From positions 17,794,001 through 17,858,000 of the forward strand of contig NC_043023.1 in the NCBI RefSeq assembly GCF_006345805.1: 64,000 bases of DNA, in the 5' to 3' direction. The stretch comes from Octopus sinensis (taxonomy: Eukaryota). Every line of letters starts with the position of its first letter. Position 1 is the first letter of the stretch. Under the pieces are notes generated by a model. It had not been told where the DNA came from and did not search any database. It saw nothing but the letters and a program-made list of their open reading frames with translations. Below, piece after piece: positions 9,416 through 62,400 of this stretch. Made by a program: the position numbers and the translations under genes.

Positions 9416-9448
<33 letters not shown>

Positions 9449-9469
9449 CATGTGTACCTGTGTGTGTTA

Positions 9470-9855: not shown

Positions 9856-9964
9856 GTACGTGTGTATATTGTGTGGGGGTATGTATGTGTACATGTATAT
9901 ATTTACATACAGTCTCTCCTGATATTATGAGCAGGAGAGAATATCCCGAGTTCTCTTTATGGCA

Positions 9965-10170: not shown

Positions 10171-10218
10171 TGTCAGGGGTAATAACATAACAACAGAAGC
10201 AAGGAAGATTTTACTAAC

Positions 10219-16321: not shown

Positions 16322-16421
16322 NNNNNNNNNNNNNNNNNNNNNNNNNNNNNNNNNNNNNNNNNNNNNNNNNNNNNNNNNNNNNNNNNNNNNNNNNNNNNNN
16401 NNNNNNNNNNNNNNNNNNNNN
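16322..16421. other. Assembly gap of 100 N
   Basis: Run of N between duplicated copies A and B. Confidence 1.
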
Positions 16422-21972: not shown

Positions 21973-23035
21973 TGGAGGTCAGTTGAGAAACAAGTGCTTG
22001 TGGCCTGGTTTCGTGGGTTGGCGCCAGGCAGACGGATAAAGCCTTTGTCCTGTCGGTTTCTAGAGAGATTAATGGGTTTGGAAGAGATATCTGACCCTTT
22101 TCCGGTCAAGGAAAGTTTAAGAAACCACCCTGTAATATTCGACGAGCTGGGTTTGTTAGTCAGTTGGCATCGGGATCAGTTTGGGAACAGGTCAGTTCTG
22201 GCTGAGACAGTGAGATGGCAACAGGGCCTTTTGGCAGTTCTGCCTGAGACAGCAAAAGGGCCGGAAGAGACAGTCAGTTGGCAAGGGATAGCAGTCGATG
22301 CGAGGGTGGTGATGGCGAGAGGCAACGACAACGTTGAGAAAGACATACACAGAGGATTGAGGAGGTGAGGGAGATTGCGGCGTGAAGGCATGGATTGCTG
22401 TATAGTAGGAGTTTGTAACTAGAAAATGTAACGGTATGTTTTGTTTATATTTTAATGTGAAATGTAAAAGAAACGAGATTGTGACGTAAGCTGCAATCTG
22501 TTGTAAAGAACTAAAAAGAATTGTGACAAAAAAGAGAAGGAAAAGAGGAAGAAAAGAAATGAGATTATAAAGAACATTGTGAATTATGTTAAAGGGAAAA
22601 AGAAAGAAAGAGAAAGACTTTAATGTTGAAATTTTTCGAACTATATTGCATCAATTTGAACTGTTTTGATTGTCTGCGGACTTGGTGTATCGTGCATGCC
22701 TTTGATTGTTTTCGAACGACGTGTTATATTTAAATGCATTGGTTGTCTTTCATTTTAATTCTGTTGCATGTTATTTTCTTTAATGTATCTGCTATGTATC
22801 ACATTTTATTTGATGTCGTATAAACTGTTCTTAAATGTAAGCAAATTGCCTTCCACCGTGTCTCTCTTCCCCCTGTTGTTGTTGTTGTTATCTCCGGTCG
22901 CCGGTTCCAGTTCGCTGCCATCTCCCACCACCGTTTCCTCTCTGTGTGGCGGATTCCCGTTTGACTGAGCTGGTCAATCGTCGTCGCTCGACTTAGTAGG
23001 GTCTCGGGTTCGAGTTTGAGAGACGGCAGGTACGT

Positions 23036-23072
<37 letters not shown>

Positions 23073-23145
23073 TATATATATGTATATATATATATATATG
23101 TGTGTGTTTATATATATGTATTATATATATATATATATATGTATG

Positions 23146-23176
<31 letters not shown>

Positions 23177-23178
23177 AT

Positions 23179-23215
<37 letters not shown>

Positions 23216-23990
23216 GACATGTGTACCTGTGTGTGTTATACTCTCTTATTCTTCATTCCTTTACTTGTTTCAGTCATTTGACTGCGACCATGCTAAAGTA
23301 CCGCCTTTAGTCGAACAAATGGACCCCATATCTTATTCTTTGTAAGCCTAGTACTTATTCGGTCGTTTACATTGCCGAACCGCCAGGTTACGGGGACGTA
23401 AACACACCAGCATCGGCTATTAAGCGACGGTGAGTGGGACAAGCCCAGATAGACAAACACACACACACACACACACACACTCATATATATATATACACGA
23501 TGGGTTTCTTTCAGTTTCCCTCTACCAAATCTACTCACAAGGCCTTAGTCGGACGGTGTCATGCAGTGGTACTAAAGCCGGAACCATTTGGTTGGAAAGC
23601 AAGCTTCTTACCACAAAGCCACTCTGTGTACGTGTGTATATTGTGTGGGGGTATGTATGTGTACATGTATATATTTACATACAGTCTCTCCTGATATTAT
23701 GAGCAGGAGAGAATATCCCGAGTTCTCTTTATGGCAATAAGGCACATGACCTGAAATAGTGTGTGGAGAGATTTAGTTTATTACATCGACCACAGTGTTC
23801 AATTGATACTTATTTTATCGACCCCGAGTGGGTTAAAAGCAAAATCGTTCTGGACGGAGTTTGAAATAAGACTGTAACGTTGCACGAAATGTTGCTGGGC
23901 GTTTTGTCCGGCGGGCCAAAGATTGTGGTAACTCGTCGACCTTGTCAGAGGTAATAACATAACAACAGAAGCAAGGAAGATTTTACTAAC

Positions 23991-24160
23991 TTTGACATTG
24001 CGAGTATTCCATTATAGGTATAATTTTGCTTTGGGTATTGCCTGGATCTGTCTGACACTTGCCCTGGACCTCCACAATTCTGTTGAATGTTGATTTAGTA
24101 TAATTTACCAAGGCTGGCAGGTGACATCCACACATCATATCTTTATTGTTACTGAGGTAG
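23991..24160 (-). CDS. LRRCT exon, copy B
   Basis: Same splice sites as copy A; YLSNNKDMMCGCHLPALVNYTKSTFNRIVEVQGKCQTDPGNTQSKIIPIMEYSQCQ. Confidence 0.85.
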
Positions 24161-27100
24161 CTGAAATTATAAACAAAGCCCTAAGTGAAAATACTTGAGA
24201 GGTAAAGAGAAGCCGCTGTTGTATTTGACAAGAAAGAAGGATAAAATAATTCCAGCAAGAATATAAAAATAACGACATTCATGTTTCGTTCCAGAAGATG
24301 TTGATAACAGCAATAAATTGATGTGGTTTCTGGTGGAAACCGAAAATATGTTAATTTCCTACTCTCTTATAGCTTATGTCTTGAATAATAAAAGTTAATT
24401 TAAACAAGGAGAATATTTAGAACCACGTAAACCGATCCCTTTAAATGATGGATTAGGGGCGGTTTGGTGCCAGAAATTAGATGGGGGAAATTCGGTGCCT
24501 CAGGTATTGAGTAAAACATTTTGGACGAAATTTTCTGTCGCTAAAGCCTTGAATGAAGATGAATCAGGGGAGATCTGAACCTATAACAGGAAGGCATTAA
24601 AGTAAACTTAACTCACCATCCTGTGTAATAGAGAGAAGAACTGCGTAAATCACAATTTTTTTTTAAATCGTTGACGCGAACAAAATTTATTTCACCAGGA
24701 GTGAATCATATATATCTTATTTTTTGGTTTTAGTTTTTCTTCTTATTTAAATACGGCGATAAGTATACAAATGTTACTTTGATAGAAAGTATTAAAACTT
24801 GCTCAAAAATAAGAATTCATGTTATTATTTTGAAGGAATATCAATTTCTCAGTTATCAGGGAATTAATTAAATCTACGTAGAATGCAGAGAGTGTATCTT
24901 CTTTGATGAGAGACAATTGAAACTTTTAAGACATGCGTAATATAATAAAACATAATCAGTAGACAGCGGACATAATAGAAAGTTTTGAGGTGTAGAGGAT
25001 ATAGAGGATATACGAAATATAGATGGCATGCGATATAGATAAAATACTGCATATAGCTGATATAGATGGCATGTTGGATATCGACGACATACTGGTTATA
25101 AATGGCATACTGTATATAAATGACATACATAGTATAGATGACATGTGGATATAAGTGATATGCTAGATATGGAAAATATACAAGTTGCAGATGGCAGACG
25201 ATATACAGACGTAGATGACATGCTTGATGATTTATTTACTATAGATGATATACAAAATGTTGATGGCATACTATATTTTTATGCAATCTATAAATACTAG
25301 AATGTTTAATAGATATCGTAAAACATTAAGAACTAAGTACACCCTCACCTCGACGTAAAACCATCCGTACTTACGACTACAAAAAGTAAATGCATCATTC
25401 AAGACGTTGTTCGTTGTTATCGTAAGATATATGACGAAAAAAGAAAAGAACTATTCAAAGCTCAACATGTTCCTCGAAACACCGTCGACCTCAATCCAAG
25501 AACAAAACTGTGAAGAATGAAAATTTCTTGTCAGGTGAACTTTTTCAAAGAAACAAGTTTTTTGCCATTGTATATATGCGGAATTTCCTTTGTATTAATT
25601 TTTACATTAATTTTAGATTGTATTTTTCTTTAAAGTACAATAGAGTACAAATGCCTTTTTCACTTTATGCACAATAAATATGGATGAAATATTTGTGTTT
25701 TATAGCTTTATAATCCGTTGCAATGAAAATAGTGTTGACAAATAAATCCGACATACGACCAGATTGACTTAGCGTCTGTCGTAAGTCGAGGACAAGGTGT
25801 AATTATATACTATTCCCCTGATATTTTTCGGCAAATTTTTAACCTAATTTAAAAGTAACTTTACTTTCTCACCCGTTTCATCGCATTTGGTGAGAGACAC
25901 TAAATCATTCACTAAAACTCTATGTGTAACACAAAAAATATCAACATGCATTAGTGAAATAAGATAACAGCTGCTCACACAGACCTAGATTCAGAAGTGG
26001 CTTTTATCTTTCAAAGCTATTAACTGCCATATGACATATCTTCTAAGTAAACATTTGATCTAACTTTCACGCGCGTAAATAATTCATGTTTTACAGTGAT
26101 TTTTACAAATGATTCAAATTTGTTATAAACTCTAAGCAGTTTAAGAGTAATTTATATTTTTCGGCACTTGGAATATGGTACGAAGGAATGACTCCTTCAC
26201 TAAAGTTGCACCGAGCCGTCACCACAACTTAGATAAATAAGATTATAGCTGCCTACTCACACAGAGCTGATTGACACAAATAGCAGACTAAAACAACCCA
26301 TCCACTTATTGTTCTGTCACATGACAAATCTACAGGACTAAATCATTCACGTAACTTTTACGCGTGACTATCACAAGATTGTAATAGACGGCCGCAACAG
26401 ATACCAGCTCAAAGATCCCCTTACCATACCACTTGACCATATTCAACCAATCAATCTGTACTTGACTGATTGTGATTTGAGACGCATTCTTTCTATAAAA
26501 GTAAACGATTTCTAGGAATATTTCGCGACACAGCTCCACGTTTCTCATAAATTACACTTTTGAAAATCAAAAAATGTGAAGCCAGTTAAATGTGTATACA
26601 CAGAAAACGTCCCATCAGAATACGACTGTGAGGCCGTTGGTTATACGTAAGCAAAATTACGTTTGTGATGGACAGGTTGAACATTCTAACGTTATATGTA
26701 ACGTTTTACTTTGTTTTACTCTCTAACCTTATATATAACTTTTTAATTCTGGCATCTATTTCTGTTTCTTCTGTTTGCTTTGTCTCTCTTTTCTCGCCTT
26801 CCCTCTGTCGTTTTCTCCTTCCACTACTAACATTTTCCTCTGTTTGCTTCTTGTCCTTCTACATTCCACCATTCTCTTCTCTCCTCCCACTACCACGTAA
26901 CCGGTGATCATTCGCATCTCTCTCATCCATTTCCTTTTCCCCCTCGCCGTTGGCTCCATCAAAAGTGTACAATATAATAGTTAAAGGCACAGCATTTTTA
27001 TGATGTCTTAGATGATCACTTATGAGAAATTAGCTGCGAATTTTCCGTTTGGCGTATTTTTATTGTGTGTATGTATGAATGTATGTACGTATATATATAA

Positions 27101-30489: not shown

Positions 30490-31720
30490 GATTATTCAGG
30501 CAAATATTGATATAAGTTTACGGTGGGAGATAAGGACTTAACGATCAAACGTGTACCATTGCATTGTTTTGGGGGAACCAAATTTCTGATGACCATTATA
30601 GGGGCACCAACTTTAAGTTTGAGAAAGTGTGGTGGTAGTCCGGGGTGCTCAAAAGAATTGAGTACCTCTATTGGATAGTTGATGACGTCCTCTGGGTCAG
30701 GAGTTGTATCGATAGACTGATATACATAGACTTCCCAGGAATGAGTTTTAGCATTTCATCATTAATATGGTGAACAGTTTTATTCCTCGGGGCCAGAATA
30801 GCCCTTTGGCCAATCCAATCCATATTCTGATAATTAGCTTGTAGATCTGGGAACACTGCATCTCTGAGATCAGAAGGCGTTTTAACAATAGTACAAATGG
30901 AATCGATGGCAATATTACCATTTTCATCTCCTGGTATTTTGCCTTCGCCAAGTGCAAGGAGGGTGTGAGGAAATGCTGCTGATGTGATATTACGTCGCAT
31001 ATGAGCACACATATTGGTGTGAAGTTTGTGAGTCTTCACCAGTGGCCACAATGTGGATGACTTAAGACACGCACTTACTGCATCAGTTGTAGTCCCTTTG
31101 GGAATGACGGGAAGTGTTTGTCGGAAGTCCCCTGAGAGAAGAAGTGTTATGCCTCCCATGGAAGGTGAAGAGTGTTTGATGTCTGTGAGAGATCTATCTA
31201 GTGCCTCAAGAGCATGTATGTGGGCCATCGTGCATTCATCCCAAACGATAAGCTTGCATCGTCTGAAGATTTCTGCCTGATCGGAGCTGTTACCGATGTT
31301 GCAAGTTGGTGTCTCAGTCAAGCGGAAGCTTGAAAGTGGAGCGAGCTGTCCTGCCGCCTGGCAACAAAGTAGCCGCAATTCCAGATGATTCCACAGCTAG
31401 GGCAATGCCTTGTGTTTGCCTAATCTCAGCCAATATTAATTTGTTGACAAAAGTTTTCCCAGTGCCCCAGGAGCGTCCAGGAAAAACATCCTCCCAGTTT
31501 TGGCCCGGACTGAATTAACAACGGAGTTGTAAGCGAACTTGTGTTCTGGAAGGAGCTTTGGCTCATTGTCGGCTATGAACTCGGCAAGCTCATCAACATT
31601 AAAACATGTCTCACACAGCAAATGTGAAGACAGAGTGTTTGTGCCTTCCCGGTTTGTTGAAGGTAGGCCATAGACCGGCAAGGCACTACCGCCCATATCA
31701 AGTACAGTATCTTCGAACGT
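30490..31720 (-). mobile_element. Helitron Rep/Hel fragment, PIF1-type helicase, frameshifted
   Basis: FFLDAPG (Walker A region), [50 protein letters not shown]. Confidence 0.9.
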
Positions 31721-36137: not shown

Positions 36138-36209
36138 ATTTGATTAATACTGGGAAGGAATAAGAACGCGCCATCCTCATAGTTTTGTATTTGGTTGTTG
36201 CTCAAATAT
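36138..36209 (-). CDS. 72-nt LRR exon, last before the cap
   Basis: ttttccAG acceptor and GTATGT donor; phase 2-2; YLSNNQIQNYEDGAFLFLPSINQ. Confidence 0.85.
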
Positions 36210-40320: not shown

Positions 40321-42362
40321 GAGTGCGAAGTTCATCTGCGACAAAGTGAAACACAAACTTCGTGTGAGAAGATATTCACCCTGGATATGCGCACAAACTG
40401 ACGCGACAGCTGAGTTCTAGCTTCAGCTCACGAGAAAGCCAAAAGTGTAATTTTAGGGGCAAAAACCTAAGTGATAATTTTCAACTGCATGATCTCTGAT
40501 GGTAAGAGGATGTTCCTTGTCACACAAGTGTAGTGAGACAAATGTTTCCCATGGATGAGTTTGCGAAAAGGTTTTAGGATAAGGGCACTTAGCCTCATTC
40601 ATCACCTGGTTTGAGCATCTGGCATGATCTGGTCATAAAATAAGCTCGTTAGTAGCCCCACACTTACCCAGACGTGGGAATAGGACGTTGATGAGAATTT
40701 TCACAAGAAATCTTGTGGTAAGGTAGGAAAAGGGTTGTTATTGTCTTTGTCAAACAAGGAGTAACTCATGATGCTTAAACAACCAGGTTTTGTGGCCAGA
40801 CTTCTTACTCAATCGTTCAAATATATCTTTAAAACCTTCCATTTAAACTTTATTCCAATGTTCCATGAGCTCCCAATCCTGAGCTATGTTAAAACATAGA
40901 ATTTCATCTTCACCAATTCATTCATGATTATTCATGAGAGCTTGGAGAGGAACTCACATTTCGTCTTGCTCAAAATAGGGTCCATTTGTGTTAGAAAAGC
41001 CGCTGATAGTTCTATTACCTTTAGGTGATACTGAGACACATCGTTCCGAAGTTGTATCTAAAATTTGGACACTTTTTTCTGATATGCTCGGTAACTGTAC
41101 ATCCATACACAAAAACATATGAAGATTAAAAGATAAACTTAGAAAACTAGAATAAAGAAGTAAAGAACGAGAAAAATGATGGAATATAGTTGAATAATGA
41201 GAATTTGAATATTAGATAAACGGATGTTTAGAAACAAGAACATGATTACCTATACATAAGAAGTAAGTAAAAAAGAAGCTCATTCATCCACACACCTACA
41301 CTTTCACAAACACGCATTCACACATACACTCAGCAAAAACTATGGAGAGAGTGCACGGGTGTTAGATAGATGCACTCTAGAAAGAGAGATAGAAAAAACA
41401 AAGTTGGAGAAGATATTAACAATGTAGATATATGGGGAAATAGATGGTACGAACAAAAGCGACCCAACTCACAGATATTTTAAATTCGGAAGGTTTTCGA
41501 AGGTACCGCGTTGAATATACGTGATATTATTGTCATTCAAATATCTGTAACATAAAACGGAGTTCATAACAAACATATAGAAAAGATTAGTGACAAAATG
41601 TTCAATATTATGGCGAAACAAATTGATATAATTAAGAAATTTAAATGGAGATGATGATTAGAGAGAGTGCGAAGTCCATCTGCGACAAAGTGAAACACAA
41701 CCTTCGAGTGTGAAGATATTCACCCAGGATATGCGCACAAACTGACGCGACATCTGAGTTCTGGCTTCAGCTCACGAGAAAGCCAAAAGTGTAATTTTAG
41801 GGGCAAAAACCTAAGTGATAATTATCAGCTGCATGATCTCTGATGGTAAGAGGATGTTCCTTGTCACACAAGTGTAGTGAGACAAATGTTTCCCGTGGAT
41901 GAGTTTGCGAAAAGGGTTTATGATAAGGACATTTGGCCTCATTCATCCCCTGGTTTGAGCCCTTTAGACGTCAGCATCTGGCATGAACTGATCGTACAAA
42001 AGTTTGTGAGTAGCCCTACACCTATCTGAAACCCCTCGAAACCTCCATTCTTAGGACGTGGGAATAGGACATTGACGAGACTTTCCGTAAGAAATCTTGC
42101 GATAAGGCAGGAAAAGGGTTGATAAAGTCTTTGGCAAACAAGGAGTAACTCATGATGCCTAAAAACCAGAGGTTTGGCCAGAATTCTTACTCAATGTTTC
42201 AAATATAACTTTAAAACCTTTCATTTGAAATGTATTCCAATGTTTCATGAGCTCCCAATCCTGAGCTATGTTAAAACATATAATTTCATCTTCGCCAATT
42301 CATTCATGATTATTCATGAGAGGTGGGAGAGGAACTCACATTTCGTCTGGCTCAAAATAGGG
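40321..42362. repeat. Pair of ~660-700-bp direct repeats (40321-40980, 41665-42362) flanking an LRR exon
   Basis: Both start GAGTGCGAAG and end CAAAATAGGG; roughly 85-90% identical by eye; unclassified. Confidence 0.85.
41473..41544 (-). CDS. 72-nt LRR exon
   Basis: gttacAG acceptor and GTGAGT donor; phase 2-2; YLNDNNITYIQRGTFENLPNLKYL. Confidence 0.9.
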
Positions 42363-48867: not shown

Positions 48868-48939
48868 AGTTGTGATAACCTGGAAAGATTACTGAAGGTT
48901 CCTATTTTGATTTCCTGGAGTTTATTTCCCCCCAAAGAC
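48868..48939 (-). CDS. 72-nt LRR exon
   Basis: gttccAG acceptor and GTAAGT donor; phase 2-2; SLGGNKLQEIKIGTFSNLSRLSQL. Confidence 0.9.
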
Positions 48940-49049: not shown

Positions 49050-50290
49050 TCATGATGAACTTGATAATGATGATGATGATGGTGATAATGTTGCGGAGAA
49101 GTGATTAATATGATGATTAGGTAGAAGTGAAGAAAATATGGCGTTAGTTTTGATGACGAAGATGTTATGTTGTTGAATGGGGGTGATGTTGTTAATGTTG
49201 ATTACTCTTTTAATGATGGTGATTAGCATGTTTATAGTGATAAGGAGTATGACATTGGTGCTGATGATGTTGGTGGTGATATTTCTCTTGGTGTTGATGA
49301 CGATGATGTTGAAGATTTTGTATCTGATCGCCATGTTTCATGGTAATGAATGATGTTGATAATGAAGAGAACGATGAAGAACTTGATGATGTTGAAGATT
49401 GAGGAAGATAAAAATGAAGACAACAATGATGACAGTGATGACAAGAAGGACGAAGACGTCAATAATGAGAGTGGTGGGATTGGGGGTGATAAAAATTTTA
49501 GAGATATTAAGTGAATGGGGAAACTTGTAAATTATGAAGAAAGCATGTAAAACAGAAAGTGAAAAGCACAGCAAACGGAAAGAAGGTAACGAGAGAAGAG
49601 GAAGGAGAACAAGAACAAGAACAGGAAGAACAAGAGAAAGGAGAGGAAGGGTAGGAAGAATAAGAAAAAGAATAAGAGGAAGAAGAAGGAGAGTGGTGGG
49701 AGAAGAAGAAGAGAAAGAAGGAGAAGAGAAAGAAGGAGAAGAGGAAGAAGAAGAAGAAGGGGAAGAAGAAGAAGAGAAAGAAGGGGAAGGAGAATAAGAA
49801 CAAGAACATGAAGAACAAGAGGAAGAGGGGGAAGGGTAGGAAGAATAAGATAAAGAAGAAGAGGAAGAAGAAGGAGAAGAAGAAGAAGGAGAAGAAGAGA
49901 AAGAAGGAGAGGAGAGGAAGGAAAAGAGGAAGAAAGAGAGGTGGTAGGAGAAGAAGAAGAAGAAGAAGAGGAGGAGGGGAAGAAGAAGAAGAAGAGGAAC
50001 AGCAACAACAAACGAAGAGGAAGGAGAAAAAGAATAGGAAGAAGAAGGGGAAGTGGAAGAAGATGAAGTAGAAAAAGAAGAAGAAGAGGAAGAACAGCAA
50101 CAACAAAAGAAGGGGAAGAAGAAAAAGAAGAGGAAGAAGAAGAGGAAGTGGAAAAAGACGAAGTAGAAGAAGAAGAATGAGAGGAAGTAGAAGGAGAAGA
50201 AGAAGAAGGAGAAGAAGAAGAAGAAGAAGAAGAAGAAGGAGAAGAAGAAGAAGAGAAGAAGAAGAGGGAGAAGAGGAAGAAGAAGATAAC
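49050..50290. repeat. Cryptic (GAT)-rich tract followed by a long (GAA/GGA) purine tract
   Basis: Low-complexity sequence; source of the poly-L/S/F and poly-K/E ORFs in the track. Confidence 0.9.
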
Positions 50291-50386
50291 AAAAGAATGT
50301 GTTTAAAAATTAGAGAATGAATTATGTAGTTCTAAATATACTTGCATTAGGGAAAGTCTGGAATGTCAATCAGTTTTGATCTAGAG

Positions 50387-52994
50387 CAGTGTCCCTTAAC
50401 CTTTATACTACCAGGAATTAGTCCTTCTTTCCACGAACCCCCTGCATCTATGATTAAAAGTCCCACCCAGATTTTAAATAAAATATAAACTATGTTTTTA
50501 GTGATTTTCTTTAATACGATTAGTATTAGTATTCTTGAATGCTTGGTTGAATACCAGGGAGTTCACAACGAAAGTTTCTTTCGACGTTCAGCCTGTTTCT
50601 GTACTTGGCCTTGACTGCAACGAGCCTGCAAAATGCAGCCTCACATAGCCCGTGGATCTACACATAGCTAAAACCCGAAGAATCTGATGTGAGATTAGAG
50701 GCTAAGTAAGAAGGTACTTGATCCATAACGTTTTAAGATCCCCCTTAGCTCAGGGGTTGAACTTCAGCTCAAGAAAGTGCTCTTGCACTTCATGCAAATC
50801 ATCAGTCAATTCACACTGAAATAAGTTCCTGATGAATATCCAGGCTTCACCCTTTTCATCTACATCTGAGAAGCATTTGATGAATTCAATTTTCAAGTTA
50901 GATGAGTGATTATTTGTTTCTTTAACTCAGAATCAAAGTTACCCTAGATGAGAGCAAAATCCAAGTAACTAAACTGGCTGTATTTCCTCGCTGAATTCGA
51001 TATTTTCAGAGATCGAGTTTCATCATGAAGGTTCGAATGATGTCATGGTGCGTGAAAATGTTGAAGTTTTACCGTTGTAGTTTAAAGTCGAGAGCATTCT
51101 CTAGCATACCTGTCCGCCAGGTATGCTAGAGACAGCTGAAAGCCTTCAGACTAGAAATTGTCATGGAGATCTGCCTTCGGTTGCAAATCTAGAAGTATCA
51201 CTACTTCTCGTCGTTCATTAAGCTGTCCAAGCATGTTCCCTTTTTGATCGCCTTCGCACATGCGTGTGAGAAAGCGATGCTTCCTTTCAGAATCCATATT
51301 TTACACAGCAGTTTAAAAAGATGACTGTTTAGGCTCCACCTTTAACAAAGTTGACAACCTTGATAGCCACGTTCAGGAGTTTTCTAATTTCAGTAGGGAA
51401 GGTTTTGGATAGTATGGCTTCACGAGCCCATCAGTACACACTTTTACCTGGTCCAGAATTTAATCTTTGATGTTTTCAGACAAGACGTCGATCCTTCACT
51501 TGACTGTATCATTTGATAGTGAAATCGGGGAAAGCTTGAATGCACTATATTTCCCCTGAACGAGTTGTGCTGCAGGTAGTATACCTGGATTTAGGAGAGA
51601 CTCTCCGATATTATGGCTCTTCTTGCTCTTTGCAATCAACATGGCGATCTCATAGGAAGTCTCGACAATTATTGGAATTTGTTGCCCAAATACCCCACTA
51701 ATGTCAAACAAAGCTTGCTTCAAGAAACTTCTTTTTGTTTCAGAGAATGTCTTGAGCTTGTCTGCAAGAGCAGGATGTGTTGTCCTCATGTGGCATTCCA
51801 AGCCTGAGGGCCGCATTCCATCATTGATCAAAGGTTTGTAACATACCACACATTGGGGGACTTCTCTGTCACCCGTTTGGAAGGACACGAATCCAAATCG
51901 AAATATATTCGTCAAGATACTTCGATTACTCTGCACTCATTGCGAATTATTTCATGTGCAGTGGACAACAGAAATATGTGAACAAAAGGTAAGACACGCG
52001 TAAGGTTATCTCAAGGACCAAGATGGAACATTTTGAGTAAAAAGTTCTGAAATTTTATTTTAATGTTTGGAGTAAAAGAACAGTTATACGAAACATTTGT
52101 ACAATAAAATGTTGTAGTTTTTGTACGAAAATATAAAAAAAATGTTTCTTGAGAAAAGAAAACATTTTGCATAGGTTTTAGTTTTACCTAGTACTTTCTG
52201 TAATATTTAAGTTTGATTTTAGTTTAACATTTGGCTTTATATTATAATTATTTTCTTACCAACGTGTTTACTATATCTTTCACATAAGCATTTAATAATA
52301 AAAATTTTGGTTTTATTGCCAATATTTCTTTCTAATGTGTGTTTTAATTGTTTTGAGACTTTATTAAATTGAGAAATAGTAGAATCTATTATTTTTGTTT
52401 TATTTCCTATTTTCAAATATATAATACTTTTGATCTTCCTAATATTTTAAAATAGTTTTCAATTTTTAAAATTAAGTCAATATTTCTTAGTATGTTACTA
52501 TAATGATTTGATAATGTTTCAGCATGTCTCTTGATTTTTAAGAATCACATTATTTCATATATATGAAAACTGTGGATCAAACTTCTTTATAATCTATTAA
52601 CTGGAAAAGATGTTAATAGTATCTATGCCTTGTAGCAGGGGTTCTTAACCTGAGTCGTGTTATAACAACACAAAAAATAAAAGGCAAATGGTAAAATGTT
52701 AAAATATAGGCAAATGTTAAAGCTACAATTCAGAAATAAGTGAGGGTTCTGAGGGAGATGAAGAGGGGTCACCAATTACAGAAAATGGTGAGTGGCGCTA
52801 AGATAGTAGAATGAGAAAACTAAAGGTATTAGGCGATAATTTTGCATGTTTTTCATAAACTTGTCATTATTTGACCATGTTCTCGTTAAGAAAATAACAT
52901 ATATAATTAGAGAAAATCCTACTTTTTCGCAAGCAGACGCGCTCCCTTCAGAGTTACTGACGCAACCCCTGCACTCCTAGGTTAAGAACCACTG
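50387..52994 (-). mobile_element. hAT element of the Buster/Charlie type, degenerate
   Basis: TIRs CAGTGTCCCTTAACC and GGTTAAGAACCACTG; left flank ATCTAGAG against right flank ATCTCATG (ATCTCGAG in the 56630 copy); ORF PQCVVC..LECHMRTTH..SYEIAMLIAKSKKSHNIGESL..LSNDTV. Confidence 0.85.
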
Positions 52995-53374
52995 ATCTCA
53001 TGGTAAACAACGTACATGATATAGACACTGAATTACACACTAATTTTTATACACTCCCATTCACTCATCCATACACCGAGACAGGTATTTATATATAAAC
53101 ACCGGTATGCATTAACTATGCCTCCTCAAGTGTCACACTGATATATATATATATACCAACTGTCAGAAATGCTACCACACTCACAGTAACAATCATTCGC
53201 ATATATCTCCTATCTTAAAAGTGGATCCAGACTCACATTCACAAACATCCAAAACCAATAAAATGCATGTATAGAGAGACGGATGTAGACCTTAAATTGA
53301 AGTATGGAAAGACATTACGGATTTAGGAAGATATCTTCAGTGAAATAGTATAAAAGAAGATTGATTCAACTTAC

Positions 53375-53446
53375 AGAGTTTTTAAACTGGAGAGATTTTG
53401 GAAAGTTGTTTCGTTGATTGCTTGGATATCGTTATAATGCAAAAAC
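53375..53446 (-). CDS. 72-nt LRR exon, array unit 1
   Basis: ttctccAG acceptor and GTAAGT donor; FLHYNDIQAINETTFQNLSSLKTL. Confidence 0.9.
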
Positions 53447-55158
53447 CTGGAGAATAAAATTGTGTTAAGAACATTTATGGTAAGAAAAAGAAAAAGATGA
53501 TGAAGAAGAAGAAGAAATAGAAAATGAAGAAGGAAAGAAGAAAAGAAGAAGGAGAAAAAATGAAGAAGAAGAAGAAGAAGAAGAAGGGGGAGGAGGAAAA
53601 GGGGGAGGGAGAAGAAGTAGAAGAAGAAAAAGAAGATAATGAAGGAGAAGAGGAGCAGCAAGTAGGAGATACTTCCAGAGAAGGAAACAAACACTAGTTG
53701 AGCGAAGTCCCGAAATGGAAAAAATGCATGAAGGACACCATCCAAGCACCTCCCCACAACACATACACACAACTATCTACTATAACACCAACATTACCAA
53801 CACCACCAGCACCGTTGCCAGCACCACCCGCCATACAAATATCGCCTTCAAAATCTCCTTTGTAAATTTCCCTGCAATCCACATATTGAAGCCCTAATGA
53901 AATACATACAAAAAACTACCAACATCACACCAAAAGATCACAGCACCTAACGCTTCACCTCAAATACAAATACTCAGCATAACTAACAACGCCTTAATTT
54001 CTTGAAAAAAAACCCTACCCCTTTGCGCTGGGAAATTTCCAAAGAACAATAACCAAAATTTTATACAAAACCTGATCGTGGAAACTCCTACAACCACCGA
54101 GAAGGGTGAGAGAAACCATTCACCCTCGCCGTAGCCCAAAAAGTAAGTTGTGCATCATTTTGTTTTCCCATTTCTCTCATCATTGTTTTGCTCAAGCAAG
54201 GCAGTTTAAACGTGCGTGGACAGGGATCATTTTTCAAGTAAGGACGCTTTCTAAACGACCTCAGTTCACTGGATTTGGACGGTGTAGTCATTAGTGAAGC
54301 CAGACTGTCCGGACCACAAGTTTTCCCGCCCCTCTATGGAGGAAATGAGATGTAACGTTTCAGTGGCACTCGAGACAAGGCGATGAAACTGCAATTTGGT
54401 TCCAGAAAGGTCTAGATCTAGAGATCAGTGCAGTCTTTGCGGACCCAGACGGCAATCTCATCGTCTTTGGTGTGAATGGTACTGATGGTGATGCTTTCAG
54501 ACTGGTCGCTGTCTATGCACCAACAAATGTTGAACATTCAGATTATTTCAGGCGTCCGGAAGCTTTTTTGGGAATGTTGCGTAGTTTAGTATTAGTAGGC
54601 GATTTCAAAAGAATCCTAAGATGCACGAATGGATTGTGAGCGGTCAAATGATAGAAGTGGAAACAAATGCCTCACAAACCTGCTCAGACGTTTCCAGCTG
54701 TCTGACAGGTATCGCGCCCTCTTCAGAGTTACTGACGCACCCCCTGCCCCAGGGGACGCGCTCCTAGGTTAAGAACCACTGATCTCATGGTAAACAACCT
54801 ATATGATATAAACACTGAATTACACACTAATTTTTATACACTCCCATTCACTCATCCATACACCGAGACAGGTATTTATATATAAACACAGGTATGCATT
54901 AACTATGCCTCCTCAAGTGTCACACTGATATATATATATACCACCTGTCAGAAATGCTACCACACTCACAGTCACAATCATTCGCATATATCTCCTATCT
55001 TAAAAGTGGATCCAGACTCACATTCACAAACATCCAAAAACAATAAAATGCATGTATAGAGAGACGGATGTAGACCTTAATTGAAGTATGGAAAGACATT
55101 ACGCATTTAGGAAGATATCTTCAGTGAAATAGTATAAAAGAAGATTGATTCAACTTAC

Positions 55159-55230
55159 AGAGTTGTTAAACTGGAGAGATTTTGGAAAGTTGTTTCGTTG
55201 ATTGCTTGGATATCGTTAAAACTCAAATCC
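55159..55230 (-). CDS. 72-nt LRR exon, array unit 2
   Basis: ttttccAG acceptor and GTAAGT donor; DLSFNDIQAINETTFQNLSSLTTL. Confidence 0.9.
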
Positions 55231-57010
55231 CTGGAAAATAAAATTGTGTCAAGAAGAACATTTATGGTAAGAAAAAGAAAAAAATAATGAAGAAGAAGTA
55301 GATAATGATGATGATGATGAAGAAGAAGAAGAAAAAGAAAAAGAAGAAGGAGAAGAAGAAGAAGAAGAGAAGAAGAAGAAGGAGAAGAAAAAGAAGAAGG
55401 AGAAGAAGAAAAAGAAGGAGAAGAAAAAGAAGAAGAAGAAGAAGGAGGAGGAGGAGGAGGCGAGGGAGAAGAAGAAGGAGAAGAAGAAGAAAAAGAAGAC
55501 AAAGAAGGAGAAGAGGAGCAACAAGTAGGAGATACTTCCTGAGAAGGAAACAAACACTAGTTGAGCGAAGTCCCTAAATGGAAAAAATGCATGAAGGACA
55601 CCATCCAAGCACCTCCCCACAACACATATACACAACTATCTTCTATAACACCAACATTACCAACACCACCAATACCGCTGCCAGCACCACCCGCCATACA
55701 AATATCCCCTTCGAAATCACCTTCGTAAATTTCCCTGCAATCCACATATTGAAGCCCTAATGAAATACATACAAAAAACTACCAACATCACACCAAAAGA
55801 TCACAGCACCTAACGCTTCACCTCAAATACAAATACTCAGCATAACTAACAACGCCTTAATTTCTTGAAAAAAAACCCTACCCCTTTGCGCTGGGAAATT
55901 TCCAAAGAACAATAACCAAAAGTCTATACGAAACCTGATCGTGGAAACTCCTACAACCACCGAGAAGGGTGAGAGAAACCATTCACACTCTCCGCAGCCC
56001 AAAAACTAAGTTGTGCATCATTTTGTTTTCCCATTTCTCTCATCATTGTTTTGCTCAAGCAAGGCAGTTTAAACGTTCGTGGACGGGGATCATTTTTCAA
56101 GTAAGGACGCTTTCTAAACGACCTCAGTTCACTGGATTTGGACGGTGTAGTCATTAGTGAAGCCAGACTGACCGGACCACAAGTTTTCATGGAGGATATG
56201 AGATGTAACGTTTCAGTGGCACTCGAGACAAGGCGATGAAACTGCAATTTGGTTGCAGAAAGGTCTAGATCTAGAGATCAGTGTAGTCTTTGCGGACCCA
56301 GACGGCAATCTCATCGTCCTTGGTGTGAATGGTACTGATGGTGATGCTTTCAGACTCGTCGCTGTCTATGCACCAACAAATGTTGGACATTAAGATTATT
56401 TCAGGCGTCCGGAAGCTTTTTTGGGAATGTTGCGTAGTTTAGTATTAGTAGGCGACTTCAAAGAATCCTAAGATGCACGAATGGATTGTGAGCGGTCAAA
56501 TGATAGAAGTGGAAACAAATGCCTCACAAACCTGCTCAGACGTTTCCAGCTGTCTGACAGGTATCGCGCCCTCTCCAGAGTTACTGACGCACCCCCTGCC
56601 CCAGGGGACGCGCTCCTAGGTTAAGAACCACTGATCTCGAGGTAAACAACCTACATGATATAGACACTGAATTACACACTAATTTTTATACACTCCCATT
56701 CACTCATCCATACACCGAGACAGGTATTTATATATAAACACATGTATGCATTAACTATGCCTCCTCAAGTGTCACACTGATATATATATATACCACCTGT
56801 CAGAAATGCTACCACACTCACAGTAACAATCATTAGCATATATCTCCTATCTTAAAAGTGGACCCAGACTCACATTCACAAACATCCAAAAACAATAAAA
56901 TGCATGTATAGAGAGACGGATGTAGACCTTAATTGAAGTATGGAAAGACATTACGCATTTAGGAAGATATCTTCAGTGAAATAGTATAAAAGAAGATTGA
57001 TTCAACTTAC

Positions 57011-57082
57011 AGAGTTGTTAAACTGGAGAGATTTTGGAAAGTTGTTTCGTTGATTGCTTGGATATCGTTTTCAGCAAAATTC
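57011..57082 (-). CDS. 72-nt LRR exon, array unit 3
   Basis: ttctccAG acceptor and GTAAGT donor; NFAENDIQAINETTFQNLSSLTTL. Confidence 0.9.
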
Positions 57083-57379
57083 CTGGAGAATAAAATTGTG
57101 TTAAGAAGAATATTTATGGTAAGAAAAAGAAAAAGATGATGAGGAAGAAGTAGATAATGATGATGATGATGATGATGAAGAAGAACAAGAAGAAAAAGAA
57201 GACGAAGAAGAAGAAGGAAAAGAAGAAGGAGGGGAGGTACAAGAAGATGAAGAAGAATAAGAAGGAGGAGGAGGCGAGGGAGAAGAAGGAGAAGAAGAAG
57301 AACAAGAAGAAAAAGAAGGGAAAGAAGGAGAAGAGGACCAACAAGTAGGAGATACTTCCAGAGAAGGAAACAAACACTA

Positions 57380-59480
57380 GTGGAGCGAAATCCCGATATG
57401 GAAAAAATGCATGAAGGACACCATCCAAGCACCTCCCCACAACACATACACATAACTATCTACTATAACACCAACATTACCAACACCACCAATACCGCTG
57501 CCAGCACCACCCGCCATACAAATATCGCCTTCGAAATCACCTTCGTAAATTTCCCTGCAATCCACATATTGAAGCCCTAATGAAATACATACATAAAACT
57601 ACCAACATCACACCAAAAGATCACAGCACCTAACGCTTCACCTCAAATACAAATACTCAGCATAAGTAACAACGCCTTAATTTCTTGAAAAAAAAACCTA
57701 CCCCTTTGCGCTGGGAAATTTCCAAAGAACAATAACCAAAAGTTTATATAAAACCTGATCGTGGAAACTCCTACAACCATCGAGAAGCGTGGAAGAAACC
57801 ATTCACCCTCGCCGCATCCCAAAAATTAAGTTGTGCATCATTTTGTTTTCCCATTTCTCTCATCATTGTTTTGCTCAAGCAAGGCAGTTTAAACGTGCGT
57901 GGACGGGGATCATTTTTCAAGTAAGGACGCTTTCTAAACGACCTTCGTTCACTGGATTTGGACGGTGTAGTCATTAGTGAAGCCAGACTGACCGGACCAC
58001 AAGTTTTCTTGCCCCTCTATGGAGGATATGAGATGTAACGATTCAGTGGCACCCGAGACAAGGCGATGAAACTGCAATTTGGTTGCAGAAAGGTCTAGAT
58101 CTAGAGATCAGTGTAGTCTTTGCGGACCCAGACGGCAATCTCGTCGTCCTTATGTGAATGGTACTGATGGTGATGCTTTCAGACTGGTCGCTGTCTATGC
58201 ACCAACAAATGTTGGACAGTCAGATTATTTCAGGCGTCCGGAAGCTGTTTTGGGAATGTTGCGTACTTTAGTATTAGTAAGCGATTTCACAGAATCCTAA
58301 GATGCACGAATGGATTGTGTGGGGTCAAATGATAGAAGTGGAAACAAATGCCTCACAAACCTGCTCAGACGTTTCCAGCTGTGTGACGGGTATCGACAGG
58401 ATTTCCCGAATGTGCCAATGTGGTCTTGGGCCAACCGCGTCGGGTCATCCAGGTCATATTTAGGTAAGGTTTTCATTAAGACAACGGAGAAGGGTAATAT
58501 AAGTTGTCTACTTTTCCAAATTGTCAGCTATACCGTCTGCAAATTTGTGATCTCTGAACTTAATTTAGATTTCATAGATTTCCAGTTACTGGAAGCTGAA
58601 CACGTCATACCTAGCATTCTATGCTTACAGTGACCGGATTACAGAATTATTTATGCGGGCCTTGACAGGCGCAATTGTTAACAAGGCCTGGTGGTAGGCC
58701 CTAAAATAGCGGTTAATGCAAAATCAGATTTAGCAAGGCTTCCGTGCAAGAAATGAATGTTATACAGGGTGAGTTAGTTAAATCCTTAAAAGTGACCTTA
58801 AGGGTAAGCAGTGCAACTGATATGCTGACTGCGAGATTGGCCATTGACGAGCACTTCAGGGATAAGCACGAAGGGTGCATTATCAGTGCTTTGAGATAGG
58901 GGGATCTAACGCTGCTCAACAGGCCCGGGTGATAGAGGCACAACGTGACAAGAAAGCTACCATTCAATCCCTAATTGACCAAAGTAGGTGTTTGGGATGA
59001 GTGCTTGGCCAAAACGTAGGTTGAATTTCTCCGATTTCCTACCGCGACTCCTGGGAAGCGAAACTGCGATGGGCTGATAACAGCTACAAAGTTAAGGGAT
59101 TCTTTGACGGGCTGCACGAGGAATAAGTCGCCTAGTTTGGATGGCCTTACCTATGAACGTTATTATAGAATTCCAGATTTGATTTAAGGCATTTTGGCAG
59201 ATATCTACGACAAAAAGCAACGAAATGGGAGAAGTTCTAGCTCTGTGAGCCGGGGGACTCTGATACTCTATCGTCCCTTTCGAACACGCGTGTTTTTTGT
59301 GCTCGTGAGTTTTGGATTTTTCTCGTGTCTCCAAACATGTATAATTTAGTTTGAACATTTAAAGTCTATAAAAGGGAACCTGCTTGAAGGGGGAGGTTTC
59401 CTGGACTATACGTATCGCCCTTTGGTGACGAATTTCTATCCTCTTTTGTATACTGTGAGTTTGATTTATGGCACTCGTTT
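57380..59480 (+). mobile_element. Degenerate, deleted Tx1-clade LINE; its 5' part is captured in the tandem array
   Basis: Remnants of GSLNVRG, FRLVAVYAPT, PNVPMWSWANR and SPSLDGLTYE motifs. Confidence 0.75.
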
Positions 59481-62400
59481 TTTTATTCTTCTAAACATTG
59501 CCTCACGCCCTGGAGAAAGTAACACCCTCTCCCTCAATGCGAACAAGAGGAAAGATGTAAAAGTGTCGGCAAATGAAATCACGGCGGAGGAAATTCGAAC
59601 GTCACTACAGCCAGCAAATCACTTGATACTAGCGAAATAAGGAAACATAAATTCGACAGTCACGGTTTCGCTTCCGTAGCAAAACTCTACCAAGAAACAG
59701 TCAACATAAATATGGATGATATTTTAAAAATCAAAAATCTAATCGAAAGAAAAGGAACAAATGTCACAATGACCCCCACCCCACCCCATGTGATATCACA
59801 CAACCCACTCCATGAAGAGCCGTCACCTTCAAAAAGCTAATTTTAAATGACAAAGTTAGGTTTCCCTCCACAGTGATTCTAAAGACTGTAGTTCTCCTGC
59901 CGACCAACATCGGGCGGTGAGTTACTTACATTAACTTAAAAGTAAGCTTTCCCAACGCGGTAGGCAACTTCCAAACAAACCTAAACAAACAGCTTTATAG
60001 AAATCTGATCGTGGAAGCATTCACAGTCAGCCACTGGAGAGAAGAAAAAACACATTCACCCTCCCCTCAGCTAAAACCATTCGTCCCGTTTTTCCCCCAT
60101 TTTCATCCATCATGGTCTTGCTCAAGTTAAGTAGTTTAAATGTACGTGGCCTGAGATCGCATTGGAAGCAAGGAAACCATTAGCAAAACCAGACTGACAG
60201 GGCTGCAAGCGTTCATGCCTCTCTGCGATGGATACAAGATCTACGCGTCTCTGTGCCAGCCGAGAGTGAGTGGTGGAACTGCGGTTCTATTCCGGAAATC
60301 TCTGGATCTAGAGATCAGGGCAGTCTTTGTGGACCCAGAATACAAGCTGGTTATCCTCGATGTAAATGGCAGTGACGGTTGTGCCTTCACACTAGTCGCT
60401 GCACCAACAGATGTTGGACAATCAGATTATCTTAAGCGCCTGGAGAGTTTTCTAGGAACGTCTGGAAGTTTAGTATTAGTTGGTGACATTAACATCGTCC
60501 TAGATGCACGTGTGGATAGTGTAGGGTCAAGAAATAAGAGAAGAGGAAACGAATGCCTCGTAAATCTGCATAGACATTTTTTTGACAGGCATCGACTGGA
60601 TTACCCGAATGTGCCAATGTGGGCTTGGACCAACCGCATCGAGTCTTCCATATAATATCTCGATAGTTTTCATTAGGTTAGAAGATAAGTATAGCATCAG
60701 TTAGGTTTAGCGAGGCTTTAGCGTTAGAAAAAACAGATAAGAGGATGATTTATTTTGAACCTTATAAGAGGCGTTAAGGGTAGGCATTGCAACTGATGTG
60801 CTGGCAGCGTGATTGTCCCTCGACCAACACGTCAATACTAAGCACGAGGTTGCATTGTCAGAGATCAGGCACGTGCTATGAAACATGAGGGATCGGTGGG
60901 CCCGGGTGGTAGAGGCGCAGCGTAACTGCAAAGCCACCATTCGGTCTTTAGTTGACGAAAATGGGTGCATGATAGATGAACCCAGCCGGATGTGTACGAC
61001 ATTTCAGTAGGACATCGCCCAATTGGGACGAGAGGATGGCCAAAACGCAGCATGGACTTCACGGAATTCCTTGTTGGCCTTCCACGACTCTTGGCGATAA
61101 AAGCCACAGAGGTATGGGATAACTTTGCTGGCTGCACGGTGTGCAAGTCGTCGGTTGTGGATAGTATTTCGTATGAAAGTTATTATAGTATGCATGCCAG
61201 ACCTGTTTGAATTCATTTTGGCAGATAACTACGGCAACTGGTAACAGAATGGGAAAATTCCTAACTCTGTGAGCCTAGGTTTGTGGTACTGCTAAAAAAA
61301 GACCCAAACAAGGAGGTTGTAATTAATAACTTTAGGCCCGTCACTCTGCTAAATGCAGATTTTAAGATTTTGAGTTACGTTTTAGTGAAGTTTGGCGTTT
61401 GTCGTCGAGTAACTGTTTGGGGATGCGCAAACCTACGCCATCCCAAACAGGATTGTCCACGACAAACTCCACCCCGTACGCTACACTATAACAGGACGGT
61501 AAAGGAACCTGGCATGGGAGGTGCACTGATCAATTTAAATTAACAGAAATCCCTAGATAGGGCAGTTATCGGTATTTGGTGGCAATTCTCATTGCTATCG
61601 GCTTGGGTCTAGTATTTTCGGGCTAGATCATGGCAATTTTCTGTGACATTCGGTCAGTGGTTCGGGTGAACGGTCTCCTATAATGCGCTCGGTCCACCAA
61701 GGATGCTCACTCTTCTCTCTACTTTATGTATTGAGTCTGGAACCATTACTGCAGAAACTGGAGGCCTTGAGGAGCATGCCGTATGAACTAGGGTGCAGGA
61801 GATCTGTCTCGTCATATGCGGATGATGTCACAATCATAGTTGTGAACGACAACCACTTGCACATTTTTGTTTATGTCGGAAAAGAATAGGTGGTGATAGG
61901 AACAAAAGTAAACCCAGAATTGTCAGTCGGCCTGCAAACTTGGCACCTGGAGAGGCAGATTGATGACGTCTAGCAACGTCGTCTGACGATTGACGAACGG
62001 TTCAGTGAAATTGCTCGGCGTCTGATTCGGTCCGAACGTCCAGGTAGAGAGAAGAACTGGGACGAGGTAGCGGACAGGGTAGCCAATAACACCCAGAAAT
62101 GGGCTGTGAAAAAAAGCACTCCCTGAAAGGACGGCAGCAGAAGTATCGAATATATACATCGCATCCGTCCTCTTCTACCTCCTGGCCGTCGTTCCTTGCC
62201 TTAATTCGGGCCTGAACAAACTGGAACAGTTATTTTTGCGCTTACTGTGGAAAGAACACTGCCCGCAGGCCAGGCGCTCTATCTACTGCCAACAGTCACT
62301 GAATGGAGGGCTGGGAATGCCGTGGCTAAAGATGCGCAGACATGTGCTGAGGCTGCGACATCTCCAGCTTTACCTTGACGATGAGTAGATGTAGTCACCC

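Follow-up and report, generated by a model that had tools for sequence, protein, structure and literature searches.

Tandemly duplicated leucine-rich-repeat exons that differ at predicted contact codons in a putative adhesion G protein-coupled receptor gene of Octopus sinensis

Results

Three tandem LRR exons and their patches

We analyzed a stretch of 64,000 nucleotides of the Octopus sinensis genome (NCBI RefSeq assembly GCF_006345805.1, contig NC_043023.1, positions 17,794,001 to 17,858,000 of the forward strand; G000:C27:17794001-17858000), here called the window, and searched an assembly of 2.72 Gb in 13,516 contigs for its relatives. The minus strand of the window carries exons of a gene whose predicted product is an adhesion G protein-coupled receptor (GPCR) with an ectodomain of leucine-rich repeats (LRRs). 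Among these exons are three of 72 nt, here called cassettes, each encoding one LRR. The preliminary description of this DNA had placed them in tandem units of about 1.8 kb, and units of that size were recovered (Table 1). They are named by position: on the minus strand C is the upstream-most unit, B the middle one, and A the last. Positions are those of the window unless a contig is given, and in unit borders, exon joins, and splice sites a slash marks the junction.

In all three cassettes the splice sites are perfect and the LRR scaffold is intact. The exons are preceded by ...ttcttaacacaattttatt(c or t)tccag and followed by gtaagttgaatcaatcttc, with gtaagttgaatc immediately after the exon boundary. 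Each cassette is a single 24-residue LRR (LxxLxLxxNxIxxIxxxxFxxLxx); the three read L-x-x-L-x-[L/F]-x-x-N-D-I-x-x-I-x-x-x-x-F-x-x-L-x-x, which agrees with the typical consensus of 24-residue extracellular LRRs. The exons are in phase 2: their first base completes a Leu codon and their last two, CT, start the next, so that any number of cassettes can be spliced in frame.

The 12 nt that follow the first exon base, hereafter the patch, encode x5-L6-x7-x8 of LxxLxLxxN. In the patch, C and B differ at 7 of the 12 nt, C and A likewise at 7, and B and A at 5, and the earlier counts were exact on recount. The sole exon difference outside the patch among A, B, and C is at nt 66 (AAA versus ACA, K versus T), which falls on LRR position x2. 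Between B and C the 59 exon nt after the patch are identical, as had been described, and so are 147 nt of the downstream intron, a figure that replaces the earlier estimate of about 138 nt.

Table 1. Features of the receptor gene in and beyond the window
Feature	Position	Strand	Description
Tandem unit A	52938-54714		1777 bp; (GAA)n tract ~53478-53662
Tandem unit B	54715-56566		1852 bp; layout as unit A; (GAA)n tract ~55262-55525
Tandem unit C	56567-58395		1829 bp; (GAA)n tract ~57114-57345
LRR cassette exon, unit C	57082-57011	-	72 nt; peptide (L)NFAENDIQAINETTFQNLSSLTT(L), begins NFAEN
Patch of unit C	57081-57070	-	AAT TTT GCT GAA
LRR cassette exon, unit B	55230-55159	-	72 nt; peptide (L)DLSFNDIQAINETTFQNLSSLTT(L), begins DLSFN
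Patch of unit B	55229-55218	-	GAT TTG AGT TTT
LRR cassette exon, unit A	53446-53375	-	72 nt; peptide (L)FLHYNDIQAINETTFQNLSSLKT(L), begins FLHYN
Patch of unit A	53445-53434	-	TTT TTG CAT TAT
Next LRR exon	48868-48939	-	SLGGNKLQEIKIGTFSNLSRLSQ; older cassette relative, 72-74% identical including intron flanks
LRR exon	41473-41544	-	YLNDNNITYIQRGTFENLPNLKY
Last LRR exon	36138-36209	-	YLSNNQIQNYEDGAFLFLPSINQ
LRRCT exon copy 1	23991-24160	-	IYLSNNKDMMCGCHLPALVNY...QCQ; 170 nt, phase 2 to 1
LRRCT exon copy 2	10219-10388	-	IDLRNNKDMMCGCHL...; nearer family consensus; in 13.8-kb internal duplication
Cys-rich domain exon 1	6467-6558	-	NYSLFQRNLQCQTCSGFTCKESEVTTCTGDE
Cys-rich domain exon 2	3479-3662	-	PVCENKTT...SCVSCYTGNLGKEKHSI
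HRM, GAIN/GPS, 7TM exons	1.4-26.5 kb beyond base 1 (G000:C27:17767544-17792551)	-	Mapped by tblastn; no internal stops

Structure of the tandem array

The units were defined by self-comparison and three-way alignment. On the plus strand, unit A runs from downstream intron through the exon and about 35 nt of intron to a (GAA)n tract, beyond which come unique intron and then a 5' fragment of the endonuclease of a long interspersed nuclear element (LINE) ending in ...GGTATCG. Every unit contains the exon with about 440 nt of downstream intron, and its (GAA)n tract, which is 150-260 nt long and reads (CTT)n on the sense strand, lies about 40 nt upstream of the 3' splice site. The LINE piece in the units is a dead endonuclease fragment antisense to the gene; in unit C it extends beyond 58395 as single-copy sequence, and this marks where the right-hand breakpoint originally lay.

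Both internal junctions read ...GGTATCG/CGCC..., the left flank of the array is GCAGACG/CGCTCC at 52931-52943, and the two junction ends each occur once at the outer borders of the array. A head-to-tail breakpoint shared in this way, with its ends found once at the borders, indicates that the array arose by repeated duplication of one segment, as by unequal crossing-over. A 1.8-kb segment that holds the exon, the (CTT)n-rich intron, and a portion of a LINE in antisense orientation was thus multiplied head to tail at one breakpoint, and the earlier claim that repeats were gained by tandem duplication of cassette exons was borne out.

Concentration of variation at the patch

Against the background p-distances of 0.031-0.038, the probability that at least 7 of the 12 patch nt differ between B and C was 2.5e-8, or 3e-5 when corrected for 1229 windows. 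In an alignment of 13 complete subfamily copies that spanned -47 to +247, pairwise diversity averaged 0.312 for the patch, 0.068 for the remaining 60 exon nt, and 0.0305 for 218 intron columns. No other 12-nt window of these copies varied as much as the patch (permutation p = 1e-4), and patch diversity was about ten times that of the flanking intron, a ratio inflated by constraint on the proximal intron flanks. The 10 patch haplotypes differ nonsynonymously throughout and nowhere synonymously, a count taken over four codons with a reticulate history and constrained introns.

The variable residues of the subfamily are x5 (D/F/N/Y), x7 (A/H/S), x8 (D/E/F/H/Y), and x2 (E/K/T), with minor variation at L6, x3, x10, x17, and x23. 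Among 45 exons of the wider family, x8, x5, and x7 had the highest entropy of 23 positions, and in 33 older family exons identity was 0.51 in the patch, 0.70 in the rest of the exon, and 0.72-0.74 in the 25 intron bases on either side. The variation is thus concentrated rather than spread evenly across copies, as had been proposed. The earlier wording that the exons are hypervariable only at the xLxx codons came near this pattern and went too far in its "only", as x2 (K/T/E) also varies and other x positions do so deeper in the family.

In the AlphaFold2 model of the N-terminus of a paralog, P0039 (pLDDT 73.3), strands E60-68 and E132-136 hold the patches NLAE and YLS(H). This agrees with the earlier assignment of the x positions to LRR beta-strands, and with moderate confidence, as the model is that of the paralog, the patch residues are predicted to lie on the binding face.

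The 25 splice-proximal intron bases on each side of the 45 family LRR exons (L001-L030; 41-163 kb) are conserved across chromosomes, which is unusual. Their consensus is ttcttaac.caattttatgttccag before the exon and gtaagttgaatca.tcttcttttat after it.

Identity of the gene

Protein searches were carried out with the spliced 12-LRR peptide, either unpadded or padded with X to reach longer proteins, and separately with the three-cassette peptide. The concatenated LRRs matched only generic LRR proteins and two O. sinensis fragments, P0032 and P0039, and the closest named matches of the window were O. sinensis predictions. P0039, a RefSeq model, has a signal peptide, an LRRNT, and LRRs, and joins two sister cassettes, NLAEN-DIQAINEKTF ... 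and YLSHN-DIQAINEKTF. P0032 comprises LRRs, an LRRCT, a Cys-rich domain of the CC..CN type, and one further domain. An exhaustive search with P0032 yielded full-length relatives of 760-1280 aa, of which P0274, P0331, P0357, and P0392 carry the Pfam domains LRR_8, HRM, GPS, and 7tm_2, one of them together with a Death domain.

The rest of the gene was mapped by tblastn with these family proteins. All of the about 20 mapped exons are open, and the junctions that were checked, through the HRM exons, are in frame. The GPS motif CSCNHLTSFAL was found at window coordinates -17166..-17324, directly before the seven-transmembrane (7TM) region, whose exons at -18024..-26409 are free of internal stops. 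In the conceptual product Pfam recognized LRR_8 (122 bits), GPS (52.8 bits; cut-off 22.5), and 7tm_2 (95.6 bits, profile positions 3-250 of 250). A GPS/GAIN before the 7TM region and a 7TM of the secretin type, two marks of adhesion GPCRs (class B2), are both present, and the solved structures nearest to the GAIN-7TM part of the family are ADGRG2 (E = 2e-68) and ADGRG6 (2e-65). Judged by its sequence, the gene is an adhesion GPCR whose predicted order is LRRs, LRRCT, Cys-rich domain, HRM, GAIN/GPS, and 7tm_2. A receptor of the LGR/GRL101 type (7tm_1) or Slit, either of which the 72-nt exons had led us to suspect, was rejected, as the downstream exons encode HRM, GPS, and 7tm_2.

An octopus-specific expansion of adhesion GPCRs, termed group 3, has been described, in which some of the 21-22 genes have N-terminal LRRs, one has a Death domain, and genes are co-localized (Ritschard et al. 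2019, PMC6408891). Its expression was reported chiefly from the axial nerve cord, suckers, and skin of O. bimaculoides and from the gills of C. minor, and positive selection was detected at the branch level with no individual selected sites (PMC6408891). The gene in the window probably belongs to this expansion, on the grounds of its domain content (LRRs in some members, Death in one) and of 64-83% identity to O. bimaculoides P0392 over the shared post-LRR exons.

Relatives of the cassettes and age of the array

The exon and its intron flanks have more than 40 relatives in the genome. A pattern search with '...N[DH]IQAI...' retrieved 18 exon 5' ends genome-wide: three in the window, one 106 kb upstream, two at C27:18.318-18.320 Mb (locus P), and 12 on C6355 and C12325. 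Half of these 12 are 5' half-exons whose remainder is deleted and which are fused to a microsatellite (L003, L019, and L022 at C12325:1468, 2075, and 2563; L004, L023, and L009 at C6355:29641, 30551, and 13057). Each has a 3' splice site, a patch, and 30-45 nt of scaffold before the CTT microsatellite begins, and is without a 5' splice site; by this structure the half-exons appear to be relics of deletions between exon and repeat tract.

Locus P, 470 kb away, is collinear with the window at 95-96% identity and has two units, Pa and Pc. The LRR exon downstream of its cassettes (C27:18313519) is 98% identical to that at 48868-48939 of the window. A maximum-likelihood (ML) tree was built on 1240 columns, namely the aligned unit positions minus patch and microsatellite, and gave ((A,Pa)99,(B,(C,Pc)90)67,(single-unit paralogs)94). 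Over these columns the units are 3.1% (A-B), 3.2% (B-C), and 3.8% (A-C) apart, and the counterparts 1.5% (A-Pa) and 2.7% (C-Pc). Since the tree pairs A with Pa and C with Pc, the three units had split before the locus was copied to C27:18.318 Mb, and locus P lost a unit afterwards, unless B never reached it. To call the array young, as was done at first, is accordingly an overstatement: with a split of A, B, and C that predates locus P and a divergence of a few per cent, this is not a fresh duplication.

In a paralogous segment upstream (L012/L050; ~161.8-162.1 kb; G000:C27:17955780-17956170), the second unit has lost its exon through an internal deletion of about 1.1 kb, which joins ...AAAATGCA to ATTTGGTTCC..., so that cassettes were being gained and lost there as well.

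At the other end of the gene, a 251-nt segment containing the GPS exon and its intron flanks has a match of 100% in an inverted copy 151 kb away (G000:C27:17625693-17625943, plus strand) and one of 99% in an unplaced scaffold (C9305:30247-30497), and the LRR exon of that inverted paralog (17563835, plus strand) is only 94% identical. The perfect copy could reflect a mosaic paralog, a recent conversion, or a mis-assembly.

Origin of the patch differences

The patches of the single-unit paralogs read NLAE (C12325:18620) and YLAG (C9503), and those of C and Pc are similar, from which the patch of the ancestral unit probably read xLA[EG]. A and B carry patches of the AGT/CAT type instead. As A, B, and C share the breakpoint and the LINE fragment, they descend from one ancestral unit, and with such an ancestor the patches of A and B would have changed after the duplication.

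The patch types NLAE, DLSx, and [FY]LS[YH] are discordant with the phylogeny of the flanks. Unit B illustrates this: its flanks are nearest to C and Pc (2.6-3.2%), and its patch is 6-7 nt from theirs, 1 nt from the DLSY relics, DLSF(AGC), and NLSF, and 2 nt from that of the DLSD exon upstream. A 3-nt indel at position -28 is combined with patch codon 3 (GC or AG) in each of the four possible ways, and so is codon 3 with nt 65. Among 171 informative site pairs 96 are incompatible, and the pairwise homoplasy index (PHI) test gave p = 0.035. Recombination of multi-base states over about 35 nt points to an exchange of short tracts among paralogous cassettes, which are about 95% identical on both sides. 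The discordant types and these four-gamete violations agree with the earlier suggestion of short-patch conversion from paralogs.

The preliminary description had recommended a genome search for donors of each 12-nt patch, and exact searches of the 2.72-Gb assembly found no second copy of any window patch. The patch of C is 1 nt from the NLAE patch (AATTTGGCTGAA), which is present at five other places, and that of B is equally close to its nearest relatives. The patch of A has no LRR neighbor within 1 nt and is 2 nt (AG>CA) from FLSY at C6355:28067. A and its counterpart Pa, which reads YLSY (C27:18317985), differ at 3 of the 12 patch nt against a background of 1.5% (p = 7e-4). The lack of an exact donor, taken with this difference, indicates that new substitutions also accumulate at the patch, and the genome-wide uniqueness of every window patch is in line with the earlier proposal of new substitution under selection.

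Three other origins were considered and set aside. A mutational hotspot beside the (GAA)n tract is unlikely, because the 40 nt between tract and patch are conserved and relic patches are identical within a type though the relics differ elsewhere. Unit B as a simple unequal crossover with C on the left and A on the right was dropped, as the two site patterns are interspersed through the unit and agree with a tree. A mechanism resembling a diversity-generating retroelement, or one driven by the LINE, received no support, the LINE piece being a dead antisense fragment and the changes not being base-specific.

Other features of the window

At the LRR exons here, the (GAA)n/(CTT)n tract about 40 nt upstream of the 3' splice site amounts to an outsized polypyrimidine tract, which might influence the choice of exons or act as a substrate for recombination. 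Upstream of the exon ending at 48939 the tract (49340-50330) reaches about 0.8 kb and lies several hundred nt from the exon. A related LINE copy at 60155-60655 on the plus strand has an endonuclease open reading frame (ORF) matching Pfam Exo_endo_phos, a 548-aa ORF at 18237-19883 (plus strand) has a reverse-transcriptase match, RVT_1, and another long ORF lies at 30668-31396 on the minus strand. The rest of the window consists mostly of transposon remains.

Discussion

We consider it somewhat probable that unequal crossing-over built the cassettes, that short-tract exchange and substitutions diversified the patch, and that selection kept the diversity. Unequal crossing-over adds or removes cassettes of one LRR at a time, as is seen in the array itself. 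Ectopic gene conversion over short tracts between paralogous exons, a mechanism to which the observed mosaic points, would swap patch types, and point or dinucleotide substitutions would add new variants. Diversifying selection on the predicted ligand-binding concave face would then retain the patch differences, and recency together with continuing exchange would keep scaffold and introns alike. The receptor would present three repeats in a row, alike in scaffold and different in their contact residues.

Several results weigh against this explanation. Some concern the statistics of the patch: the proximal intron flanks are clearly constrained, so that the introns may not be neutral and the patch-to-intron ratio is inflated, and a codon-model dN/dS is not meaningful on four codons. 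The PHI test over whole units was not significant (p = 0.64), and tree support for the position of B is weak (67%, and 49-56% on fewer columns), so that the argument from discordance rests partly on distances. The remainder concern the gene copy itself. No signal-peptide/LRRNT exon was found on the minus strand in the 340 kb upstream, between C27:17.858 and 18.34 Mb up to the LRRNT exon of the paralog at C27:18342993, or anywhere in the 264 kb read, at very permissive thresholds. The exon for the domain of about 100 aa that lies between the Cys-rich domain and HRM in all relatives was likewise not found here at very permissive thresholds. Two conserved Cys residues are lost in the exon at 3662-3479, where CC..CN reads CY..GK and where the TGT>GGT change creates an internal AG/GTAAGG site. 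The three cassettes occur in no protein of a collection of 5.8 billion sequences in the length ranges searched. This copy of the gene may therefore be decaying.

The main rival to diversification after duplication is concerted evolution, in which the patches would be ancient, the flanks would have been homogenized by conversion or crossing-over, and purifying selection would guard the patch, the contrast being then a product of the uniform flanks and not of a fast-evolving patch. It is partly compatible with our preferred explanation, as it invokes the same exchange in the opposite direction. It would account for the recurrence of the three patch types among several paralogs whose flank haplotypes differ, for the reticulate history visible in the 41-56% of informative site pairs that are incompatible, and for the perfect copy of the GPS exon 151 kb away beside an LRR part at 94%, which suggests that long-range homogenization occurs. 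Against it stand the shared breakpoint and LINE of the units and the xLA[EG] patches of the single-unit paralogs, by which A and B changed after duplication, and the difference already accumulated between the patches of A and Pa. Moreover, there is no shoulder of divergence beside the patch, such as a site shielded from conversion should leave: the adjoining 25 nt of the 5' splice-site flank show 0 differences, and upstream identity is 94.5%. We regard concerted evolution as unlikely, if a serious contender.

A second rival takes up the state of the gene: in a decaying copy, the patch differences would be a neutral by-product of ectopic conversion from functional paralogs. The missing LRRNT/signal exon, the missing domain exon, the lost disulfide pair, and the lack of an annotated protein with these exons all fit such a course. 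So does the LRRCT, whose exon is doubled by a direct duplication about 13.8 kb apart (8000-11500 and 22000-25300) that straddles an N gap at 16322-16421. The two copies (10388-10219 and 24160-23991) differ by 6 aa, and as the exon runs from phase 2 to 1 both cannot be included in frame; they are either mutually exclusive exons or an assembly artefact. On the other side, the about 20 mapped exons are open with the checked junctions in frame, and the cassettes keep perfect splice sites and an intact scaffold. The exons flanking the missing domain (3479 to G000:C27:17792543, that is, -1458) still join in frame (G/TG). The three patches are unique in the genome and hence not simply copied in. As for the LRRNT, exons of this type number at least 78 genome-wide, not all of which need belong to adhesion GPCRs, and in the paralogs the exon lies 8-23 kb upstream of the first cassette. 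A gap of 100 N at window coordinate 69352-69451 (L042; G000:C27:17863352-17863451), 12 kb upstream of unit C, falls exactly where the paralogs hold this exon, which may thus be unassembled, so that its absence is not proven. Decay as the source of the patch differences appears improbable to us.

The cassettes might instead be used alternatively, by mutually exclusive or combinatorial splicing of the Dscam type, to give isoforms with different patches. Their equal length and phase and near-identical splice signals would permit this, the CU-rich tract of 150-260 nt about 40 nt upstream of each 3' splice site could be a regulatory platform, and the proximal intron flanks of the family are as conserved as the exon scaffold. 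Nevertheless, one, two, or three cassettes all keep the frame, and P0039, the only transcript-based model available, joins two sister cassettes in one product; introns as alike as these give no basis for judging the pairing of docking and selector elements. We give regulated alternative use little weight. Finally, an array or unit mis-assembled from haplotypes or from the 18.318-Mb paralog, as might be feared from the near-identical segmental duplicates of the region, the N gaps at 16322-16421 and 69352-69451, the 100%-identical inverted copy of 3' exons, and the two rather than three units at the paralog locus, is very improbable, because the array (52.9-58.4 kb) is free of N gaps, its units are 3.1-3.8% apart from each other and 1.5-2.7% from the paralog units, each has its own microsatellite length and private indels, and nowhere else in the assembly is there a counterpart of B that could have been its source.

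The receptor class, the expansion of adhesion GPCRs in octopus, and positive selection at the branch level were known beforehand. For this expansion we know of no selected sites, ligands, or functions. What is new is the exon-cassette mode of repeat gain in this adhesion GPCR family, the location of the diversification to four codons per repeat, which published site tests had missed, and the evidence for very short exchange tracts. At this locus the place and manner of change in the ectodomain of an octopus adhesion GPCR can be read nucleotide by nucleotide. It provides a natural series of receptors with a common scaffold and different predicted contact residues, and points to residues for mutation or exchange in binding assays and to exons whose use could be traced by RNA-seq. 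The pattern is familiar from immune LRR receptors and is not a new principle; here a GPCR family associated with the arm and skin of the octopus displays it.

A bolder conjecture, which we think very unlikely, is that the LRR ectodomains form a fast-diversifying recognition repertoire of interchangeable cassettes, with contact codons shuffled by short conversion and possibly combined by splicing. If true, a repertoire of this kind could be used by suckers, skin, and arm nerve cord for surface or chemotactile recognition, and could include the unexplained self-recognition of octopus skin by suckers. The immune or self/non-self receptor suggested in the preliminary description fared less well: the class is that of adhesion GPCRs, not a recognized type of immune receptor, and such a role is pure speculation.

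Comparison with known systems

In comparison with the group 3 expansion, the gene in the window and its relatives carry exactly its domains (PMC6408891). In contrast to that account, the variable sites are here pinned to four codons per repeat, duplication of LRR cassettes at the exon level is not described there, and the N-terminal exon family looks larger, with at least 78 LRRNT-type exons against 21-22 genes (PMC6408891). In their GAIN and 7TM regions the octopus receptors align best to ADGRG2 and ADGRG6. To our knowledge, no vertebrate ADGRG has an LRR ectodomain. The order LRR, LRRCT, HRM, GAIN, and 7TM of ADGRA2/3 resembles that of the octopus family. ADGRA receptors have four fixed LRRs and an Ig domain, whereas the octopus family has the Cys-rich CC..CN-type domain and the extra domain of about 100 aa in place of the Ig domain, and its repeat number is evolving.

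As in the LRRs of plant NLR/RLP proteins, lamprey VLRs, and TLRs, variation falls on the exposed x positions of the LxxLxLxx strand and is accompanied by exchange between paralogous repeats. Unlike those proteins, the gene in the window is without NB-ARC, TIR, or kinase domains, and an immune role is not indicated. In lamprey VLRs an incomplete germline gene is completed by copying from partial cassettes that flank it, and the partial cassettes on the paralog scaffolds here look instead like deletion relics fused to a microsatellite; the cassettes of the window are complete exons with canonical splice sites in an ordinary multi-exon gene, with no sign of somatic assembly.

LGR4-6, the glycoprotein-hormone receptors, and Slit also have one LRR per 72-nt exon in symmetric phase, a structure that allows repeats to be gained and lost by unequal crossing-over. 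The repeat number of these LGR4-6/Slit-type genes is ancient and fixed, whereas here the copies are 3-4% apart and the paralogs are littered with half-exon relics. Compared with a Dscam-type cluster, the cassettes of the window share equal length and phase, and the frame does not enforce exclusivity. Lastly, the conopeptide genes of molluscs have a short hypervariable coding segment between conserved flanks, introns included, in a lineage-specific family. They belong to another protein class than the octopus receptors, in which the variable segment is a four-codon patch that is repeated in every LRR.

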